This document shows positions 2,422-25,871 of a DNA stretch of 64,000 nucleotides, piece by piece. The notes beneath the pieces were generated by a model. It did no database searches. It was not told the origin of the DNA and saw only the letters and a program-made list of their open reading frames with translations. Positions within the stretch are counted from its first letter, which is position 1, and every line of letters begins with the position of its first letter. The position numbers and the translations under genes were made by a program. Origin of the DNA: Lepidodermella squamata (lineage: Eukaryota; Animalia; Gastrotricha); contig JBLDXI010000015.1 of assembly GCA_047495785.1 (NCBI GenBank), positions 2,914,001 through 2,978,000 of the forward strand, written 5' to 3'.

Positions 2422-5400
2422 ATGGCTGATCCAGCATCAACAGCGGCGACACCGGCTATCACCGCAGGCGAACCTACATTGGCTCAATTACTGCAACAAC
2501 TAGTCCCGTTAAGTGTCTCGAGTCAAACGGCGCTCAAGGAACACAGCGAAGCAATTCAAAAACTAATTGCCGACAATGAATCAAAGGCGACTCGTGAGTT
2601 CCCAGGTTTCAACCCACAGGCCGAACTGTGGGAAGACTACAAAGGACGGTTTGATACATACGCACGTGCCCACGGTAAAACCAACACCAAGGCCGCTTAC
2701 TTCTTGGCTTGTCAAACGGACGTCTTGTACAGAGAGCTACAACTTCACGCCAAACAAGAACATGACAAAGAACTAAACGCCCTCAAATACGAAGAGATCT
2801 GCACGTTCATGGCCACTCAATACGATCCGAAAAGGTTCGTAGTGCGTGAACGTCACAAGTTCTGGAGCAACATGTGTCGAAAGACGAACGAGTCAATCCA
2901 GCAGTTAGTCAGTCGAATCAGAGCCGACGCTGCTACCTGTGATTTTAAATCCATAAAAGATCCCCTCGACGAAGCGTTAAAGTCTCGATTTATCGGCTCA
3001 ATTAAAAACGAAAATGTACTTCGTGCCATCTTCAAAATCAAAGACGACGAACTTACCTTCTCCAAAGCAATCGAGGTGGCTATCGAAACTGAGGAAGCTG
3101 CCAAAGTAGCAAAAGAAACAGTCGCACCACCGCCGCAACCCGTCTATCAAATATCGACAAAACCGAAGAAGTTCGGCAATAATACGAAATTTCAACGAAA
3201 GAATTTTCACAAGTCGAACCAACAGTCGTCGCAGCCACCGACTAACCAGCCCAATCAATTGTCTTGTCAATCTTGTGGCAAGTCGGGTCATCCACGGAAA
3301 AACTGCCACTACCGTGACTACGATTGTAACTCATGTGGCAAGCATGGACATATAGCTGCAGCTTGTCGATCGACCAATTCCGATGCGAAACCAGTTAAAG
3401 TCATAACGCTTCGTCAAAACAAATCGATCGTCCTCAACAAAGTTGCTGAATCAAAAGATGTTGTTTACGAAGATCTTCGAATCGGAGATCAAATATTCAC
3501 CTTTGAGGTTGATTGCGGTTCACCCGTCAATTTCATCTCGGAGGATTATTGGACGATTTTGGGCTCACCGACAATGTCGTCAGCAAACTACAAATTCGAA
3601 AGTGCTTCAAAACATCATTTGAATGTTCTAGGGGTAACTAAATTGGCAGTATTTACGGCATCTATCGGTCCGTGTACTCTGGATTTCTACGTTACGCCCG
3701 TTCCCAAGTTGAACCTGGTTGGTATTGACGGTATGAAACCTCTTCTCATTTCTGTCGATCAGAAACTGGGCATAGTTCCAGTCCCGGTTAATAAGGTCTT
3801 TGAGCACCTCAAACCCGATGTTGAATTACAGGAACAGGTTAGGAAAGTTTGCGATGAATTCCCTGAATTCTTCAGTCCGGAACTGGGTGAATTGAAAAAT
3901 TTTGAACTCGAAGTGAAATTTGTTGACAATTTTACACCTGTGTTTTGTCGTCCAAGACCAGTACCATTGGCTCTGACTGAGGACCTGAATAACGCTTACG
4001 AAGCTGGTATTAAACGCGGTGTCTGGGAAAGAACTTCGTTCAATGAATGTGGCACTCCGGTCGTACCAATCATCAAACCGTTATTACCAGGTCAAACTAC
4101 CCGAAAGCTGCGAGTTTGTGGCGATTATTCAGCGTCATTGAACGATCAAATCGAACCTCACCGTCATCCGTTACCATTACCGGAAGATATTATGCGGAAA
4201 CTTCAAGGTGGTTACATGTACAGTCAAATCGATCTGGCTGATGCGTACAACCAAATCAAACTGGGTCCGATTTCGCAACGACGACTTGCTCTCAGCACAC
4301 ATCAAGGTCCGCTACTTCAGAAACGTTTACCCTTCGGAATCAAGTCAGCTCCCGGGTATTTTCAGCAAATCATGGAAACTATCGTCCGACCTTCCGGGCG
4401 TTGCCTGTTTTCTCGACAATGTGATTGTCACTGGCAAATATGCTGCAGATCATTTGTCGAATTATCGTGGGGCGCTCAAACGTTTTGACGAAGTAGGTCT
4501 CCGTGGCCGCTTGGAAAAATTCGATTTTGCGGTTCCGGTTATGCCCTGCTTAGGACATCTTCTGTCGGCTGAAGGTCTGGGTAAAGGTTTGAAAGTTGAA
4601 GCTGTTTTAAAAATGGCTCCACCTGTTGATGTCCCAACTTTACGTTCTTTTCTGGGTCAAGTTCAGTTTTACGCGAAATTTTTGCCCCCGAACTTATCCA
4701 CTGTGCTAGAACCCTTTTACAAATTGACCAAACAAGGTGAACAATGGCATTGGGGCGATAAGCAGCAAACTGCGTTCGACGAGGTGAAGCGTCTATTAGC
4801 GTCCGACGAGGTTTTGGTTCACTTTGACCCGAAAAAGCCAGTGGGTATAGCAGTCGATGCGTCTCAGGTTGGTATTGGTGCAGTTTTGTTTCACCGATTT
4901 CCGGATGGTTCCGAACGTCCAATTGCGAATGCTTCGAAAACATTGACATCAGCTCAACGCAATTACAGTCAAATCGAAAAGGAAGCTTTGGCAATAATTT
5001 TTGGGTTGAAAAAGTTCCATAATTTTTTATTTGGTCGACATTTTTCAGTGGTCACTGATCATAAACCGCTGTTGTCACTTTTTCATCCGAAGAAAGGCGT
5101 GCCGCAAATGGCTGCAAATCGACTGGCTAGATGGTGTTGGATGCTGCAACAATACGATTACGAAATCGAGTTCCGTCGAACAGAAGATCATGGTAATGCC
5201 GATGCACTCAGTCGCTTGCCAGTCGGTGAAGATCCGAAGTTTGATGGGGAGGAAAGTGGTGAAGATGTTGATATGGTCCTGACAATCAAAACAATTGGCT
5301 ATCAATCTGCTGCTGAGTCAAACTCTGTGATTCAAGAATCTGTTCGCGATACAGTGGTATCAAAAGCAGCGATGTTCATTCGAAATGGGTGGCCAGATAA

Positions 5401-7277
5401 AATCGAAGAACAAGAACTCCGAGACCTCAAAAAACTTTCCTCTTATTTGTCCGTTAACGGTCCGTGTGTATTTTATGGCAACAGGTTGTTGGTTCCTAAA
5501 AAGTTACGCGACGAAGTGCTCAAAGTTATTCATCTGGGTCACTTTGGAATCCAATGCATGAAGCAACTGGCTCGAACGGCTGTCTACTGGCCGGGTATTG
5601 ATGATGTGATAACTAACCTGGCTAAAACTTGCTCCAACTGCAATGAACATCAAAACAATCCGATCAAAGCACCCGTTCACCCTTGGTCAATTCCTGAGAA
5701 GCCCTGGACTCGAGTTCATGTTGATCATGCGATAAATTTTCTGGATTCAAACTGGTTAATTCTGGTTGATTCTACTTCTCGCTACCCTTGCATTCATCCA
5801 ACGAAATCGTTGACGGCTAAAACGACCTTGGAATTGTTAGACCAAGATTTTGCTCATTTCGGTTATCCGCAAGTTCTTGTTTCCGATAATTTTCCAATGT
5901 TTCTTTCTGATGAGTTTCAGCGAGGTTGCCAAGATCGAGGTATAATTCATTTAACCCTTTCATGGCGGAATTATTTATCTGCGGGAGAAAAAATATTTGA
6001 CGGCTGTTATAGGGGTTTTAGAGGGCCCTGATCACGATTTTGAAACCCGTTTATCTCTATCTATCACCGTTAATGCTGTACAAAAACTGGCCGAAATCGT
6101 CCTATCCGCCCAGCTGATTTCAGCAGATTTTTCGAACTAATTTCTGTGTCAGGTGCCTCCAGCTTTGGAATTTTAGATTATAAATTACTCCCATGAATGT
6201 CCCCAAGATTCTCCCGCACTTAAATTGCCGAAAACATTCAGAGTAAAAAAGTTTCAGAGGCTCAGCATTCAGATCTGAATTCAGCTTTTCCAGTTTTTGC
6301 TCGCGACAGTTTTTGCAGCACAAAAACCACGCACTCCGCCTGTATAAGTCCTGGCGGATAGGACGATTTCGGCCGGTTTGATTAAATCTCAATAGCGTCG
6401 TCATTTTTAATTTCCAACTCGAAAAAATTTACACAGAGGTCAATGAGACTATGGCGGACCCGGTGGTATTTTTTGTTGGATCAAAAAATGATCAGAAACC
6501 TATGAGATTTCAAGTTGAAAAAAATCGAAATTTCAATCTCAGGTTGACTATTTTCAAATTGCTTGTATGTCCTGACCATGCAAGATAACGGCGCCCTGGT
6601 CTCAAAACCTGGTAGCCAACATCGAAAAGCAATATTCCTGAAAAGGGCGATCAAAAATTCATCGAATTCAATTTTCTGTGAATTTTCAAAGTCGAAATTC
6701 CGAAATCGTCCTTCCCGCCGTGAAAGGGTTAACCGGTGCACCTTACAAACCTGAAACCAATGGCTTGGCGGAGCGTTTTGTGGAAACCTTCAAAGCTTCC
6801 ATGAAAAAGTCTAATCTGTCGAAAACTGCTGCGCTAAACGAATTTCTGATGATTTACCGACGTACCCCGTTGGCTAATGGTTATTCACCTAGTGAATTGC
6901 TGAACGGTCGTCAAATTCGCGCTAAGATCGACACTCTGGTTTTGAATCCGATTCTAAGCGATCAAAAGCGACAAACTGCTCGAACGGAAACTGACGTTAT
7001 TGCGACCAAGTTTTCGGTTGGTGACGAAGTCTACGCTCGTGTTCTGGGTGGTCGTTTATCTAATAGCGATCCCAAATGGGCAGCGGCGATTGTTGAACGC
7101 GTATGTGGTCCACGTCGTTATGAAGTTCGAGTTATTGCAAATGGACTAATCTGGAAACGTCATGTTGATCAGTTATGTCCTAGGAGTGGCGATATTTCTG
7201 AACCTCCTGTGCCGACTGTACCTGAGATGTCAACTGGCTTACGAAGAAGCCCGCGCTTACGTGTGGATGGAAATTGA
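2422..7277 (+). pseudogene. Gypsy gag-pol polyprotein, disrupted
   Basis: Two CCHC knuckles (CQSCGKSGHPRKNC, CNSCGKHGHIAAAC), protease FEVDCGS, RT LPFGIKSAP, RNase H DAS...TDHKPL and integrase HHCC. Lesions: frameshift near 4384, RT motif FLDN instead of YxDD, and an insertion at 5955-6728 in the integrase core. Confidence 0.93.
5955..6728. mobile_element. piggyBac-like non-autonomous element inside the Gypsy integrase
   Basis: TTAA duplicated at 5951-5954 and 6729-6732. TIRs CCCTTTCATGGCGG / CCGCCGTGAAAGGG. Removing it restores IHLTGAPYKPETNGLAERFV. Confidence 0.93.
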
Positions 7278-7308: not shown

Positions 7309-8327
7309 TGTTGTGGAGTGCAATGTCGTCAACTAGGTCATTTAGACAACCACGTGGTCGCTACTCGCACTCACCACGTGGCAGCAGTAGCCATCGTCAT
7401 CGTCGTCGTCATTTCATGATTTTATTTCTGTCGATATTATTTGTTGCATAGATAAATAAAAAAGATAGATCTGACACGCTAGTACATTTATGTGTGCCGA
7501 GATGACTCATCAAGAGTTTTTGCTTTTTGGTCGCGTGACCTGATAATCACTTGTCGACATCACTATAAAAAATACGGCATAATCAACGCAAGTGACAAGT
7601 GATTTTGGGTGGCTACTTCACCTCAATTTATCTCAAAACACACCCCCTTCGATTTTTTGAACCAATTTTATTTTGAAGTATCAAACTCGAACCATATCTA
7701 CATTTTTTCCGAATTTGCGGCCGGCCTTCCGTCATTTTTCTAGAATTTTTCAAACCTTCCACATTTCAGCAATCAATTTAATGGCGCTGTGCTGATTGCT
7801 AGTTTTTTTGGTGGCGTGAATCATAATTATTGCAGATGACGCCGTGATTCATCAGGCGATTTTTTTGCACAAAGCTAGTAAAAGCAATAATAATCACTGC
7901 GCGGAAACGTGCGTCTTTCAGAATTTTTCTACCAACAACCATTCCCTGGCCGGAAATTCCGATTTGACAAGCGTTGAGTTGAAGGTGAGATCTACATGCC
8001 CTATTTTTTTCGAGAAAATCGAAGGGGGTGTGTTTTGAGATAAATTGAGGTGAAGTAGCCACCCAAAATCACTTGTCACTTGCGTTGATTATGCCGTATT
8101 TTTTATAGTGATGTCGACAAGTGATTATCAGGTCACGCGACCAAAAAGCAAAAACTCTTGATGAGTCATCTCGGCACACATAAATGTACTAGCGTGTCAG
8201 ATCTATCTTTTTTATTTATCTATGATTTGTTGTGAATTGATGATTTTAAGCAATTAATGTGTACTGATAGGGGATCTTTATTACGAATAAAATTCGGGTT
8301 GAAAACCGACTGTCTTTGAATACAACA
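7309..8327 (+). repeat. 3' LTR, interrupted by a MITE
   Basis: 7309-7446 and 8233-8327 together reconstitute the 5' LTR. Confidence 0.93.
7447..8224. mobile_element. Non-autonomous DNA transposon with about 210-bp TIRs and an 8-bp TSD (P- or hAT-like)
   Basis: CATAGATAAATAAAAAAG... is inverted at both ends (about 7447-7656 and 8015-8224). ATTTGTTG is duplicated at 7439-7446 and 8225-8232. Confidence 0.93.
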
Positions 8328-8764
8328 GGTTTATGGCAAAAATGTAGGATAGTAGAAGAGAAAGGTGGTTGTGATTTGTTACAATTTTGATGAAGGTAGT
8401 GTTCACCGATGGTACCAAGTTTTTCTTGGTTGGTCGCGTAATAGTTGATGTATTGTTGTTCACATTCTCTACAAGTGACTGAGTAAATAACATTTTGTAA
8501 CGTGCATTTAGGTGTGCCATTAGTCTTCGATAGTCCAGTGTTGCAGCCCCAACAAGTATATTTAGTGTGAATGTGGTTTCCAAATCGAGTAGGCATGATT
8601 TGTTTCAGAGTATTTGATTTCCAGGTGATCTGGATATTTTCTCCAAAGAATAGTGTAAGTGGTTTGATTGCTTCCTCGGCTTTTTCTGCTATTCTGTCAC
8701 CAAGGAATGGTAACGATAACCTGAAGACGTCGCTTTTAGGCTTAGGATTATTAGGTTTTAGCAC
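8328..8764 (-). mobile_element. Penelope-like element fragment (linker and GIY-YIG endonuclease)
   Basis: LSLPFLG, CWGC, CTLQNVIYSVTCRECEQQYI and IGEHY motifs. The ORF continues at 2161. Confidence 0.8.
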
Positions 8765-9309
8765 CCTAGTTATAGCGTTTTAAATAAAACCGGTCGCAGA
8801 TTGTTACCGCTGTTTACGCGCCGGTTGAGAGATTTGGCGTCGATTTTGAAAACAAGACAAATAAATTACGATTTTTTACAGTGATAATATCACTTTATGC
8901 ATGTTTTATTACTTTTAGAACCTCTAGAATTTTACGACCTCTAGTCACTCTGCTGATTTTACTTGCCAGTTTTAACCTGTTGAACCTGTTGAATTTCACG
9001 ATCATAGTGGTTATTATTCATTCGATTTTCGAATAAAAGTGTTTGCATCTTGCATTTTTCATCTCCCGTGTTTTGATTAATAAGCTGGATCGAAGGCAGG
9101 TCAAGCCTCTGACAGCCGAAACTGCCCAGCACGTCCAACCGTGATTTTAAAGTTTATGGAGGAAGAAGGAAAAATATCATTCCACGCTTTATTCTGTGTT
9201 CTCTATTTGCCACTTGAATTTCTCAATTTTCCATCACCATCAGATGCCTCATTACACTTGAACTCAGGCTCAACTCATCTTCATGAATTCTCTGAATTTC
9301 AACTAACGA

Positions 9310-12300
9310 TCAACTGCAGACGGAGCCGAGAGTGTCCAGAAACCATTGATGGCTGATCCACAAAATCGGTTTGGAACTCATGCAAGTCGCAGGTCCGGTC
9401 ATGCTCTTGTATACCGGAATTGCGCACTTCAAATGAGCGCAGATTTTCAGAATTTGCTTCTCATTATCGGCGATATTCTGCTGCAATTTGCTAACATCAA
9501 ATGAGGAAGCTTGTTTAGGCAGGGCTGGACATTGAGCGATGCCACCAATGAATCCCTGATAGCAAGTTTCTGCAACCTTGGGGTTTAACCGTGCAGCTCG
9601 GAAATTGCTGTCTGCCCTGATCAGATATTCGTAAGTTATGCCGTTCTTAGTAGCTATGGCTGAAGCCTGTGCAGCTCGAGTTGGATTACACTGGTTCCCG
9701 CACAGCGTGTAGGCGTACTCGTCTCTGAAATGAGAGATAAAAATTAGTTAGATGCTAGCGAATGTTGCGAGCGCTGACACAAACCTTATCTTTTCGTATT
9801 CGCTCAAACATTTCTTAGCGCATTTATTGAAGTCTGCTGGATCTACGATGGCAGTGAAGAACTGAATGTACACCCGGTAATAATTATCAGTATCCCACTC
9901 GGGAATTGGAGCAGGAGTAGGAGCTGGCGCAGTATAGGTTGTAGTAGTAGTAGTAGTAGTAGTAGGTTGTGTTGTAGAAGGCGCCGGTTTAGGTGGGACA
10001 CCGCCTGGACAGAGGTTGCTGATTTGGTACTCGGAAGCGATTTCGAAGTACAGCTGTAATCGCGCGCAGCTGTCGTTGGCTGCTATCTTTCCATACTCAA
10101 CAACAGCGCAAGATGCATACCGACAAGCTTCAAACTTGTCGATTTCGGTATAATTACTGAGAAATTCATAGGCGATTGGCACTGGTGAACAGGCAGATAC
10201 TTTATCGATTGGGCGGCAGCTATCATTTAGTGGATTCATGTTATTAAATTGCCAGACTGCCTCTCTACCATCACTTGCCGTTTTACCTCTCTTGACAGCC
10301 ACTTTAACAGCTTGCTCAATCACGAAGTAATTTCTCTCGCGGCATATGATATCTACGGTTCCTTGGGAACTAAAGAAATGTTCGGGGAAAATGTTGGAAA
10401 GCCACTATAGTGAAAATCTGGACTGCAGAATAGCACAAAATTCAGTTTTTAAGGCCATTTTCGTGTTGTCAGATTAGGGCCTGAAAAAAGTGCTCTATTA
10501 TGCGCTAATACGAGAACCCGAAAATGGCCTTAAAATACTGAATTTTGTGTTATTCTGCACTCGAAATATTCAATAAGGGGCTGTATTAGTCTCTTATATT
10601 GGATGAATGATGCCATTTTTACTTGGTGCACGTTTTACTTCCTTCGCTAGGGAGAAGTTTGGCGTTATGCAAGGCGAGGTCGTTGAGCACGTGGTAAGGG
10701 GCCACCTTGCCGTCAGGGGTCTCTACCAGTGGAGCGACGATATTACCGCCCACCAATTCATCGTATATTTTGAAGAAGCCACCATCTCCCCAATCAGCTC
10801 CAAGACTATTCAAGGCTACGTAATACGGTTTGCCGCTTGCTCGTTCGACGCCATACCCTACAAGTGTGACGTATTGTTCCGTCGGGGCTTCGACCGGACA
10901 GGCAAAGAAAGTCTGATTCTGATTCATGATTCCAGCGGATTTGTATTTAGGATATTGAGACGACATGAGATACGTGCCTTCGCAGTCGACAGATGCCGTC
11001 ACACAGCCATAATCGTATATTGCCTTGATGTAATAATCAACAATATTAATAAACAATAATAAATAATAAATAATAAAATAAAATAATAAACAAATTGAAT
11101 AATAAATTCAGAGGGAACTTCAAGACGATTTGAACCGTCTGAGCGATTGGCTTGCTTCAAATAGCCTTATGGTCAATGGTAAAAAATCCCAGTTGATCGT
11201 GCTACCAACTGACTATAACACCAAAATTCCCCACCAAAATTCGATATCAAAATTGAAAATTGTCCGATTGAAACGACATCGTCGTTCAAAATCTTAGGTT
11301 TCACTCTTGATAACAAGATGTGCTTCAAGGATCATTTGAAAGTGATTAGGAACAAAACTCGTAGTGGTCTATTTGCGTTGAGAATCACTGCCAAATATCT
11401 CGACCGAAAAACGCTAAAACTGATGGCAAACGGTCTGCCACCTGACGTATTGCGACACAACTCTATCGCAATTGGCACCTACGAAATTAAAGAAACTGCA
11501 AAGGCGCCAGGACCAGGCTGTCCGAATAATTTGCCGCGCTCCAGCGAACGCCGACCCGGTACCGCTGCGACAAAGTCTGCGTTGGCTAGATTTGGATGGG
11601 AAGCGTAAAGTCCATCTGGCTACCTTGATCTGGCGGTGCTTAAATGACGAAGCACCGGTTGCAATCGCTGCTTTTTTTACCAAGCAAACCGCGTCGGGCT
11701 CCACTCGAAGCCAAACAGCCAAGAAAACTATGAGCTGTCTCCTTAAAATGCCAAAGACAAAGTCCAAGACCATGGACCGTTGTCTTGAACACCACGGGGC
11801 AGTTTTTTGGAACAGTTTGCCCGACGCAGTGCGCTCTGCAACAAGCGCAGATCAGTGCAGGAACTTGGTCTACAACTACCTATTAAGTCTGGCTCCCAAC
11901 AACAATCTCAACAAAAAGCCAGCATCCTGAAATGAAACCTATACTCCCATATTTTTCTACCATTATTGTTGCTCAATTTTATACTGATTTTTGTCAACTT
12001 ATCTAACATGATGTTTTATAACTACATAATCTTGTGTACAGTTTGATCAAACCCTAACTAATCCATTGTCTTTTTTTACAGCTGAGCTTTCCAACTTTTT
12101 CTAAAAACGGATGAATGGCTCTTAAATAAATAAATAAATGAATAGGAAATAAAAAAGCACGACTATTGTGTACCTTTTTAATACATGAAAAACTCCAAGA
12201 CCTCTTAACCCAATTAGTACCCCAAACGTCCTGCATAATGTTACGCTCTTTCCGGAGAGGAATGCTCTTCGAAAATTCATCATATTTGCACTGGCCATTG

Positions 12301-12838
12301 TCTCCTTCGATCGTATGGCTGCGCATAGGATAGTCCTCATACGTCGGCGCTCCGCCTCTCCTGGCCATGAAATCCAACACTTTCTGAGGTAACGCCTCAA
12401 AATTTTCACCATCGCAGTATGGGAAGACACAGTCGATAAATGCCTGTGAAAAATAGTTTTATAGTTTTCTAACATATTTTCTAGTTTATACTTCTAGGTA
12501 GTTTTTACCTGCTCGGATATTTTCGGGGCTGGCTTACCACCCCATGCCTTCGACCAAGCACATCGAGCTGCGGCAACGGCCGACCAAATATAAGAACCAG
12601 AGCAGTGCTGGCTCTTGACATCGAACCATTCTGGATGAAGCTTCGAATGGTCTAGGCTGTCAGGAATCCCCGTAGTATTACAATTGACTGCAATATAGCT
12701 ATCGCTCTGCTTTTTGCCCTTTATGTTACCAGCATTCCAGAGAACTGAAATCAAGGGAACGAGTTGAAAGTTCAAAATAATAAAATCTCTCTGTTAACAC
12801 CTACCAGCTAGAGTTCCTAGGACGAAAATGTTGTTCAT
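9310..12838 (-). CDS. Papain-like copy B: intact six-exon ORF, catalytically dead (Cys to Ser, His to Tyr), with two Cys-rich C-terminal domains and a Thr-rich linker
   Basis: Approximate exons 12838-12805, 12744-12510, 12443-12174, 11023-10623, 10369-9785 and 9724-9310 join in frame. It reads KSQHCSGSYIWSA, EQYVTLVGYG and ALNSLG where the paralogues read [20 protein letters not shown] and NSWG. Confidence 0.88.
10408..10576. repeat. Small palindromic MITE in an intron of copy B
   Basis: TGCAGAATAGCACAAAATTCAGT...AAGGCCATTTTCG is mirrored by CGAAAATGGCCTT...ACTGAATTTTGTGTTATTCTGCA. Confidence 0.75.
11106..12140 (+). mobile_element. 5'-truncated non-LTR retrotransposon (CR1/L2-like RT C-terminus), antisense in an intron of copy B
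   Basis: LQDDLNRLSDWLASNSLMVNGKKSQ, FKILGFTLDNKM and WNSLPDAVRS motifs with frameshifts. A (TAAA)n tail lies near 12123-12140. Confidence 0.85.
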
Positions 12839-13533
12839 AATGTAAAAATTATCAAGTCAAGAAAATTAAATTAATGAAAAAATGGCTGAACCTGTCCATT
12901 ATATTGAATCTGAACGCACTCAGCACTGAGTCATTTGGATGAATAAGTAAATTATGTAGATTCAGGCGCGCACATATTCACGTATTGTTGTGATCAGTCT
13001 GACTGTCTGGCTGTCTAGCTGTCTGGTTGGATGTTTGAATTTACCCCTGGCGAACATCTTGCGAACATGACGTCAAATTTTCTATATTTTATATCTTTTT
13101 ATAATTCTTCAACTGCAACGGCATTATATTTCAAGTTGACATTGCATATAATTAATGAATTATAGTAAGTTCGCAACCGCAAATTCATAGTGATATATTC
13201 ATAACGTGATATTTCCATATAGAGTATATTCATAACGAGACATATTCGTATCGAAAGTGGTGATCTTTTCATAACAAGCGTAAATAAAAATAAAGAATGG
13301 TGACCTATTCGTATCAACGGCACACGTTAACGCGTGATATGACTGATACAGAAACCGAATAACTTAGTGGAACCAGTGAATCCACAATAATCTGATTGGT
13401 CGGGTGGTTCCAAGTCTGTGATTGGTTGGTTCAAAGAGCACGCGGCACGCATGGTTCGAGGGGTTGGTTCAATTTTTTTCTGCGATCATGAAATATGAAA
13501 TGTAGCGGAAAGTGACCACCCTTCTGCCATCTA

Positions 13534-18905: not shown

Positions 18906-21208
18906 TTAATTGCACAAGGAACCAAGAGTGTCCAAGAACCACTGGTGGCTGATCCACAGGATTGGCTTTGAACTCATGCAAGCCGCCGGTCCCGTCATGC
19001 TCTTGTAAACCGGAATGGCGCACTTGAGATGGGCACAGACCTGGGAAATTTCAGTCTTGAAGTAGCTAGAATACGACAGGAAGTATCTCAGGTCAATAGA
19101 CGATGCTGAAGCAGGCGGAGCTGGGCATTGAGCGACACCGCTAACTTGCCCCTGGTAACAAGTGTTAGAAGCACCTCCGTAGAATCGTGCGGTTCGGAAA
19201 CTGCTGTCTGCTCTGATTATATCCTGGTATGCCATGCCATTTTTAGCAGCAATCGCGGTGACATTCGCAACTTTAGCTGGAACGCATTGATTTCCGCACA
19301 GTGTATAAGTGTACTCGTCTCTGCAATTTAAATCATTGAAACTTGGAAATTTGGGTGAGCTCAGACACAAACCTGTTGGTGGAATCTGATCCGCTGTACA
19401 AGTAAGCAACCCAGCATTTCTGTTTGCAGTCTGCCAGTGACGCTTCATCACCAGGATACACCAAAGATCCCCAGAACGCGCGGTATAGCATGAAGTAGCT
19501 ATCAGCATACCAATCCGGAATAGGTCCGGTTGGTACTGGAGCTGGGGCAGGTGCTGGAGCTGGAGCTGGAGCTTGAGCAGGTGCAGGTGCAGGGGCTGGA
19601 GCTGGGGCTGGAGCAGGGGCTGGAGCAGGTGCAGGTGCAGGTGCAGGTGCGGGTGCAGGAGCTGGAGCAGGAGCGGGTGCCGAAGATGGGACTCCGCCAG
19701 GACAAATTTTGCTGATTTGGAACTCGGAAGCGATTTCGAGGTACAGTTGATACTTTTTGCAGTCGTCAGTATCTGCTAGCTTCTTGTACTCGTTAACAGC
19801 GCACGATGCATACCTGCACGTATCGGGTTTCAGATCCTCAGGATAGCCATTCAAATAGCCGTAGCCGAGTGGGATAGGAACACATGCGGATACTTTTTCG
19901 ATCGGCCTGCATGCCGATTGGTATAGACCGTAGTCAAACCCAGCAGCTGCGTCAGCAACGTCATTCAAAGTTTTCCCTCGCTTGGTAGCAGCTGCAGTGG
20001 CAAAATCACTCATGCCATTGATAGATATGTAGCAGCCGTAAACTTCAGTCAATGTTCTGCAATGTTGTTGTGCAAATAATCAGCAAACAGTTAAACAGTT
20101 ATTGAATTACCTATAACCTCTCCTTGAGCAGTCTCCTCTATTTTTCGTAATTTCCGCGGAAAATGTCTGGACGTTGGACAGCGCAAGGTCGTTGACGCGA
20201 TCGTACGGAAGCACTTTCCCCAAAGTTTCGGGTGTCTCGACTAGAGGAGCCGATACGCCAACGGCAACCGAGTCAGCATAAACCCTGAAGAAACCCCCTT
20301 CTCCCCATTTTGTCCCCCAGCTGTTCAGGCCGACGTAGTAGGGCCTGCCACTCGCTTGATCGACGCCGTAACCCACAAGTGCAACGACGTGGTTAATTCC
20401 ATAATTGGGGCACCCACCGACACCCCAATCCATGATTCCGGAAGTGTATTTGTTCGAACCAGGTGCATTGCTGCAGTACGGCATAACCAGGCAGCCGTAA
20501 TCGTTAATCGCCTGGGTTTAAGCAATGCAGGTTGGTAATTATAAATTACTACAGACTTTTGCTTACTTTCTTAGTGCATGTAAAGCTATCAGCACTGAAG
20601 CTCTTATAACCCCATGAGTTCCACGGCAAGGAATCACCACGTGCCTTCCGGAAGGGGATGCTCTTCGGAACGGCATCGTATCTGCACTGCCCGCGTAAGC
20701 CTTGGCTCATGTAGTCGCGTATCGGATAATCGTCATAGGTTGGCGTGCCACTTTTTCTGACCATGAAATCGAAAACGTCCTCAGGAGCACCCCCGGTACC
20801 ATTACAATATGGCGCATTGCAGTCGATCAATGCCTGTGGAAAAGCTTATATTTTTACGTTCTTCGTTCAGGAGAATGCTAACCTGCTCGGAGATTTTCGG
20901 AGCTGGTTTGCCCCAGGCCTTCGACCAGGCGCAACGAGTTGCAGCAACAGCCGACCAATAGTAACAGCCCTGACAGTGTTGGCTCTTGACGTCGAACCAT
21001 TCCGGATGAAGCTTTGAGTGGTCAAGATTGTCAGGGAGCCCTGTCGTATCACACGTTTCAGTTTCTTGCCTTCCGGCTCCGCGCTGATACTCCAGCAAGT
21101 CGGCACTGCATATCGCTATAATATTATATAGCCAAAGTTAGTTTACTTATAATGAACATGAACGATTAACTAACCAGTTAGAGCCGCCAGAGTTACGAAT
21201 GTGATCAT
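18906..21208 (-). CDS. Papain-like copy C: intact, catalytic triad present, two Cys-rich C-terminal domains joined by a (Pro-Ala)n linker
   Basis: Six exons from ATG 21208. Motifs [21 protein letters not shown] and GLNSWG. Stop TAA at 18906. Confidence 0.92.
19535..19680 (-). repeat. Coding hexamer repeat for the (PA)n linker
   Basis: GCTCCA/GCACCT/GCCCCA units encode more than 20 consecutive Ala-Pro dipeptides. Confidence 0.9.
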
Positions 21209-24765: not shown

Positions 24766-25871
24766 TAAGAATAATTTCTTCGATGTCAAAATGCCTATCG
24801 TATATCGTATATATTGGAATATAAAGGATTCCTTACTATTTTTTCAAGCGTTCCCTCTCATCCACCTCTCACCTCTCTTATATTTAGAGCCACAATATTT
24901 TTTCTTCGCCACGCACAAAAAGGAATCACATAGAATGCCGCCAATCACCTTCGAAAGAGAGGATTTTCACGGCGAAAATGCCTAGCACCGGGTAGTCGGG
25001 CAAATTTTTTTTTGAGTATCGCTTAAGCTGTATGCAAACAAAAGTATGAGGTATAAATGTGAACGCTAATTTTTACTTGCGCACGTTTTCACAGGTAGCG
25101 TCAAGAGTGTTGGCATTAGACCCTCTCTACAATTTAGGTCCTCCTTTCAACCCTTTCATGGAATAGGTAATTATTCTTATGATAGGGATTGCTTGATATT
25201 TCTTATGTTGCTTTATTTTCCATCACCATCAGAACAAGCCATACACTCGAACTCAACTCATCTTTACGAATTCTCTGAATTCCATTCAACGATTAATTGC
25301 ACTAGGAACCAAGAGTATTCAGACAGGTTTCCAAATAAATACTGCAATCAGACTTGACTCAACTTCAAATTTATTTCACCTGCAAGCTGGAGCTGGAGGA
25401 GCAGCAGGTGCTCGCACGATGGAACTCCGCCAGGACAGAACTTGTTTATTTGAAACTCGGAAGCAACTTCGAGGTACAGCTGAAACTTTTTGCAGTCGTC
25501 GTTATCTGCTAGTTTCTTGTACTCGTTAACAGCGCACGATGCATACTTGCACGTGTCTGGTTTTAGATCTTCAGGATAGCGTCTCAACCAGCCGTAGCCG
25601 AGTGGGATAGGAGCACATGCGGATACTTTATCGATCGGCCTGCATGCGGATTCATGAAAGCCGTAGTTGAAATCTACAACCGCTTCAGCGACGTCATCCA
25701 ACGTTTTCCCTCGCTTTGTAGCGGCTGCAGTGGCAAAGTCACTGAGCCCATTAACAGAAATGTAGCAGCTGTAAACTTCGGCCATTGTTCTGCAAAGTTG
25801 TTGTGCAAATATTCAGTAAATTAGTAACAGCTAATCAGTTTTAGAATTACCTATAACCTCTCTCTGAGCAG

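Follow-up and report, generated by a model that had tools for sequence, protein, structure and literature searches.

Is a papain-like gene that has lost its catalytic residues a decaying relic, or does it encode a protein that is kept for something other than cutting peptide bonds? The question is raised by copy B, one of six full-length papain-like paralogues (A–F) on contig JBLDXI010000015.1 of the gastrotrich Lepidodermella squamata (assembly GCA_047495785.1). Copy B lies on the minus strand at positions 9310–12838 of the 64,000-nucleotide stretch analysed here (contig positions 2,914,001 to 2,978,000, hereafter the window). A first-pass annotation, made from the letters alone, had read it as a catalytically dead protease gene held under purifying selection. 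Our analysis indicates that B is probably a real gene, maintained by selection, whose product has the papain fold without catalytic activity, that is, a pseudo-protease.

To what extent is B still a papain? In database searches, all run exon by exon, the Pfam family PF00112 (Peptidase_C1) matched exon 4 of B with 33.3 bits (E 6.7e-8, cut-off 20.7); exon 4 of copy C scored 52.8 bits, and exon 3 of C, which covers Peptidase_C1 positions 53–105, scored 20.1 bits, just below the 20.7-bit cut-off. The best solved relatives of the region around the catalytic His and Asn were cathepsin C, plant papains and cathepsin B in the Protein Data Bank (PDB). Exon 2 of copy C, searched by itself against PDB sequences, returned nothing meaningful. 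Since exon 2 is too divergent for Pfam and PDB sequence searches, the nucleophile column was fixed by profile-profile alignment, in which the six exon-2 translations were aligned with the canonical cathepsins of the same genome. The second Cys of a C-Q-G-C motif then aligns with the papain nucleophile (Cys25) and the Gln before it with the Gln of the oxyanion hole, a placement with which the spacing from the LP-D start motif and from the SEQ-DC motif agrees as well.

At the nucleophile column, B has TCT (Ser, 12593–12595) where all five paralogues have TGT (Cys), as the first-pass annotation had proposed. The column of the general-base His (papain His159), fixed by aligning exon 4 to the cathepsin C light chain, which itself has His there, reads CAA (Gln, 10874–10876) in B and CAC (His) in the five paralogues. 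The earlier claim of a His-to-Tyr replacement was thus right about the loss of His and wrong about the residue: the Tyr of B is the next residue along, where the other copies have Val. The Asn (papain Asn175, codon 10808–10810) and the Ser after it are kept in B, and the Trp that follows them is Leu (TGG to CTT, 10802–10804), which bears out the NSW-to-NSL change that had been described. Altogether, six codons of the active-site region are altered in B, with 12 nucleotide differences from the paralogues among them, which argues that the remodelling is old.

These changes are not spread evenly. Over the roughly 49 residues of exon 2 from LDHSKL to ISEQ, just three residues of B deviate from the other copies' consensus, each of them within five residues around the nucleophile, and such clustering appears to be more than chance. 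Of the C1-consensus states, B has lost 18 against 7 in the active copies (p=0.04, a value that depends on the alignment and uses canonical cathepsins as a distant outgroup), which would fit a relaxed catalytic constraint with the fold retained. The cysteines point in the same direction. Among the 29 columns that are invariantly Cys in the other copies, 25 are also Cys in B; the four exceptions are the nucleophile, a leader position and two cysteines that neighbouring indels have shifted. In total there are 28 cysteines in B and 30 in C, the nucleophile and the leader Cys of C included, and all 28 structural cysteines are present in B. By homology B would therefore be placed in Peptidase family C1, without the Cys and His that are required of an active peptidase, and it appears to belong with the non-peptidase homologues of that family, whose papain-fold homology, catalytic loss, intact open reading frame (ORF) and purifying selection it shares.

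Could B instead be an enzyme with altered chemistry, using Ser as its nucleophile or having a non-proteolytic activity like the Cys-to-Ser cathepsins of the silicatein type? A Ser at the nucleophile position, the retained Asn and the perfectly conserved flanks of the active-site helix would all suit such an enzyme. In B, however, Gln has taken the place of the general-base His and Leu that of the neighbouring Trp, so that no Ser-His pair is left, and the known papain homologues with Ser for Cys that retain some activity keep their His, which further counts against this proposal. We regard it as very unlikely.

Is the gene itself intact? The rebuilt model of B (Table 1) has 1941 nt, 646 codons plus stop, with 0 internal stops; its five introns, of phases 1,0,0,2,2, are all GT–AG with the ten splice dinucleotides intact, and their positions and phases are identical in copies C, E and F. 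The six in-frame exons reported earlier are thus confirmed. The arrangement of a 34-nt first exon followed by an intron of ~60 nt is common to all six full copies, and the linker is Thr-rich in B as opposed to an Ala-Pro repeat in the paralogues.

Is this gene under selection? Over the last 36 codons, we recounted exactly the 15 synonymous and 1 non-synonymous codon differences between B and C that had been noted before. Over all alignable codons, B compared with A, C and F by the Nei-Gojobori method (NG86) gave proportions of synonymous differences (pS) of 0.67–0.71 and of non-synonymous differences (pN) of 0.26–0.30; the synonymous sites of B are saturated against every paralogue, and the ratio of non-synonymous to synonymous rates (omega) is at most ~0.2. 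We then fitted a Goldman-Yang codon model with F3x4 frequencies, pooling the exon blocks as independent columns, and compared omega on the branch to B (omega_B) with omega_B=1 by twice the difference in log-likelihood (2dlnL). In the protease domain (exons 2–4, 277 aligned codons), omega_B was 0.20 with a background of 0.146 (2dlnL 58.0); in exon 5 without its linker (153 codons), 0.27 with a background of 0.193 (2dlnL 18.3); and in exon 6 (137 codons), 0.15 with a background of 0.758 (2dlnL 53.6). In the protease domain, omega_B and the background do not differ significantly (2dlnL 1.2). The branch to B has a dS of 1.67 and a dN of 0.33. Purifying selection on B, as the first-pass annotation had claimed, thus extends over the protease domain and the C-terminal modules (omega_B 0.15–0.27). 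The outcome that had been named beforehand as speaking against selection was a protease domain whose omega on the branch to B lay close to 1; the value of 0.20, with omega=1 rejected, is far from it.

How long could B have survived without selection? To simulate neutral decay, random substitutions only were introduced into the exons and splice dinucleotides of B, and a gene was scored as intact when its start codon, open frame and ten splice dinucleotides were preserved. The probability of remaining intact was 0.34 at K=0.01, 0.11 at K=0.02 and 0.045 at K=0.03, and 0 of 2000 simulated genes were intact at K=0.077, which is the dS between E and F, the youngest duplicates. Any unselected period of B has therefore lasted at most about 0.03 substitutions per site. 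Together with the saturated divergence, the simulation implies that selection has acted on B during essentially the whole of its divergence, and the multi-nucleotide remodelling of the active site does not fit inside so short a neutral window.

Some observations nevertheless weigh against a working gene, and they are best considered with the proposal that selection on B ended only very recently and left a young pseudogene, silenced for example by a retroelement in intron 3. This insert is a 5'-truncated non-LTR (long terminal repeat) retroelement in antisense orientation (~11101–12100, (+)), and its 98% identity to three other genomic copies, on other contigs, marks it as young and recently active; it could have silenced B too recently for decay to be seen, and at the two lowest values of K the simulated gene still stays intact in a part of the trials. 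B is known from DNA alone, so the case for a working gene is a case made from sequence. The tree is unrooted, and the branch to B also spans the active clade's stem and whatever time passed before B was inactivated; as a phmmer search with exon 6 of B (window 9313–9723) against 1.84 billion representative proteins gave 0 matches, and with them no orthologue or outgroup, the branch mixes these periods and yields no separate omega for the time after activity was lost. One nucleotide change suffices for Cys-to-Ser and one for His-to-Gln, so the age of these two replacements is not strictly fixed and they could be recent. That B acts by binding is, lastly, something we infer. On the other side, the insert is intronic and antisense, neither it nor the insert in intron 4 supplies a sense-strand poly(A) signal, and the promoter, 3' untranslated region (UTR), splice sites and ORF of B are all intact. 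Recent silencing would moreover still require a long selected retention and the remodelling of the active site in a functional gene. A young pseudogene thus seems unlikely to us, and a gene that is still maintained the better account of the locus. Paralogue G (described below) was considered as an outgroup and rejected, G being a deletion derivative of the active clade.

Could the conserved blocks of B have been copied from its active neighbours by gene conversion rather than preserved by selection? Conversion does occur in the family, as exon 6 of C against E and F has a dS of 0.05 and the remainder of the gene ~0.9; in B itself there is one short dip in synonymous differences in exon 5, and the 3' flank is unexpectedly similar to that of A. 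Under the conserved blocks of B, however, 42–58% of the codons for identical residues differ, the same as elsewhere in the gene, and conversion would have restored the catalytic residues too. With no low-dS tract beneath the blocks, we rejected conversion as their source and hold it to be highly improbable. Errors of assembly or amplification were also considered, the published Lepidodermella squamata assembly having been made from amplified DNA (PMC11660948). Against each of its paralogues, B shows differences at ~30% of the non-synonymous and ~70% of the synonymous sites, and individual active-site codons are changed at as many as three bases, which makes it a separate locus and not a mis-called copy; that its substitutions are errors is next to impossible.

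What is the family to which this maintained pseudo-protease belongs? The six full copies A–F and a seventh gene, G, lie on one contig: A runs past the start of the window, B, C and D are inside it, and E and F are ~90–100 kb beyond its end. C has 677 codons, E and F 685 each. A full copy consists of a short hydrophobic leader, a papain-like domain without propeptide and then two Cys-rich modules with a low-complexity linker between them. Leader and mature-domain start are within about 25 residues of each other throughout the local family, and a Pfam scan of exons 2–3 found no propeptide family (I29 or equivalent). A and D have a frameshift in common just after the first Cys-rich module, and D is without exon 6, a piece of its 3' UTR being kept. 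With A and D damaged, C, E and F are left as the catalytic copies that are clearly intact. The active neighbours of which the first-pass annotation had spoken thus exist, although two of the four supposed ones in or beside the window are not among them, and it is probably the catalytic-looking neighbours A and D that are broken while the dead B is intact. B is apparently the oldest member of this lineage-restricted family. The frameshift is located right after CPGGVPS, at the start of the Ala-Pro linker, in both A (L019:~3300–3320) and D (window ~25400–25420), and in A a GT exactly at the frameshift could splice in frame to exon 6.

Among the active copies, exon 6 has an omega of 0.76. The low dS of this exon between C and E/F (window 18909–19319 against L021:8191–8601 and L016:1501–1911), next to 3' flanks that cannot be aligned, indicates a recent conversion that ended at the stop codon. 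Gene G (L020:~4620–5391 (+), G000:C15:~3062620–3063391) consists of the leader and the initial residues of exon 2, which lead directly into a short Ala-Pro linker and the C-terminal module. Derived from the family by deletion, it has no protease domain, and its being intact suggests that the C-terminal module may work on its own.

To what are the C-terminal modules related? The blank result with exon 6 was matched by a word search with exon 5 (window 9994–10368; first module and linker), which gave 0 matches, and for exon 6 the ESM Atlas returned nematode Cys-rich clusters below threshold only. For comparison, we searched with a canonical cathepsin-L ORF taken from this genome, an imperfect control because of a near TGA-interrupted match; the best identity was 56% and no protein of the same species was found, so the blank searches say nothing about the expression of B. 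They do mark the C-terminal module as an orphan among publicly available sequences. AlphaFold2 models from the six-sequence alignments were helical for both the exon-5 module (pLDDT 68) and exon 6 (pLDDT 60), at modest confidence, and a Foldseek search against the PDB, made with the exon-5 model, found nothing below E=0.9.

What might a pseudo-protease of this kind do? From its N-terminal hydrophobic leader, its 28 cysteines and its Thr-rich linker, B is predicted to be secreted and disulfide-bonded, with the linker probably O-glycosylated. It would retain the papain fold, be unable to hydrolyse peptide bonds by the papain mechanism and act by binding, with the C-terminal module as its foremost candidate surface and the remodelled cleft as another. 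The last 40 residues of B are almost identical in the active paralogues and in the protease-less G. As the most constrained surface of B is common to the active enzymes and to G, B most likely meets their ligand or matrix, and its most likely role would be that of a non-cleaving binder or competitor there. The first-pass annotation had suggested a decoy, binder or regulator of the active neighbours; competition, scaffolding and regulation are all candidate modes of action. A more elaborate possibility, which we consider a long shot, is that B is an obligate partner of the active enzymes and sets where or when they act through the common C-terminal docking module. If so, B would be a trans-acting substitute for propeptide-based control in a family that has no propeptides.

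Inactive papain paralogues are already well known, and B is a further, well-supported case rather than a new principle. The closest precedent is that of the scabies-mite SMIPP-Cs, which the first-pass annotation had cited. They have the same pair of changes, Cys-to-Ser and His-to-Gln, and like B they are C1A paralogues that belong to a multicopy family and have active copies next to them. Their proteins are secreted, lack proteolytic activity and exert their effect through binding, properties that for B are predicted. The comparison thus holds as to kind, with a separate origin: the SMIPP-Cs belong to the lineage of the mite group-1 allergens and cathepsin L and lack Cys-rich C-terminal modules, whereas B has such modules and comes from a family without propeptides that is known so far from a single genome. 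Because B has its intron positions, both C-terminal modules and its flanks in common with the local paralogues, it was inactivated independently of the SMIPP-Cs and converges with them on the same pair of substitutions.

Silicatein, testin, TINAG/TINAGL1 and Plasmodium SERA5 also have a papain fold with Cys replaced by Ser and have been retained as non-protease or altered-function proteins; unlike B, most of them keep the catalytic His. Their domain architectures are different, and we know of none with the C-terminal modules of B. For the SMIPP-Cs, expression and function (modulation of fibrin clots) have been demonstrated experimentally, whereas B, known from sequence alone, offers a clean case of selection maintaining a protease look-alike in a phylum with almost no molecular biology. 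It leaves the understanding of pseudo-enzymes unchanged. As the most constrained part of an orphan and putatively secreted family, the C-terminal module is the place to seek the ligand of that family.

Table 1. Exons, enlarged introns and flanking regions of copy B (window positions).
Feature	Position	Strand	Description
Core promoter region	12847–12935	(-)	TATA-like ATATAAT at 12898–12904, 66 nt before ATG; 78% identical to E and F
Exon 1	12805–12838	(-)	ATG and 11 codons of hydrophobic leader; phase-1 donor
Exon 2	12509–12744	(-)	N-terminal part of papain-like domain; Ser at nucleophile position (TCT, 12593–12595)
Exon 3	12174–12443	(-)	Middle of papain-like domain; four conserved Cys
Intron 3	11024–12173	(-)	1150 nt, against 55–58 nt in paralogues; retroelement insert
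Exon 4	10623–11023	(-)	C-terminal half of papain-like domain; carries His, Asn and Trp columns
Intron 4	10370–10622	(-)	253 nt, against 51–54 nt in paralogues; MITE-like palindrome at 10408–10575
Exon 5	9785–10369	(-)	Cys-rich helical module 1, Thr-rich linker and beginning of C-terminal module 2
Exon 6	9310–9724	(-)	C-terminal module 2, nearly invariant 40-residue tail; stop codon 9310–9312
3' UTR and flank	9120–9309	(-)	80–82% identical to copies A and C; AATAAA at 9188–9193

The flanks of B are conserved as well. Over the 90 nt before the ATG, B and E are 78% identical and thus as similar to each other as E and C are. Over the ~190 nt after the stop, B resembles A and C to the extent given in Table 1, with the AATAAA at equal distance; this 3' UTR is far better conserved than the adjoining synonymous sites, which argues for constraint on the UTR, although the similarity may possibly reflect a conversion tract confined to the flank. 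An Rfam search with the conserved 3' flank gave no match. Further downstream, blocks located 250–520 nt after the stops of B and A (window 8788–9060 and G000:C15:2911982–2912240) are 84% identical overall, with stretches of >90%, far above the synonymous sites of both genes. The block has no other occurrence in the genome, no Rfam match and no conserved ORF, and is either a conserved regulatory element or the product of flank-only conversion. The downstream flank conserved between A and B is interrupted by an element-like ORF (8249–8779, (-)). The palindrome in intron 4, which resembles a miniature inverted-repeat transposable element (MITE), has about ten relatives elsewhere in the genome, and a Gypsy-type LTR retrotransposon with reverse transcriptase (RT), RNase H and integrase ORFs lies between A and B (window 2422–6031, (+)).

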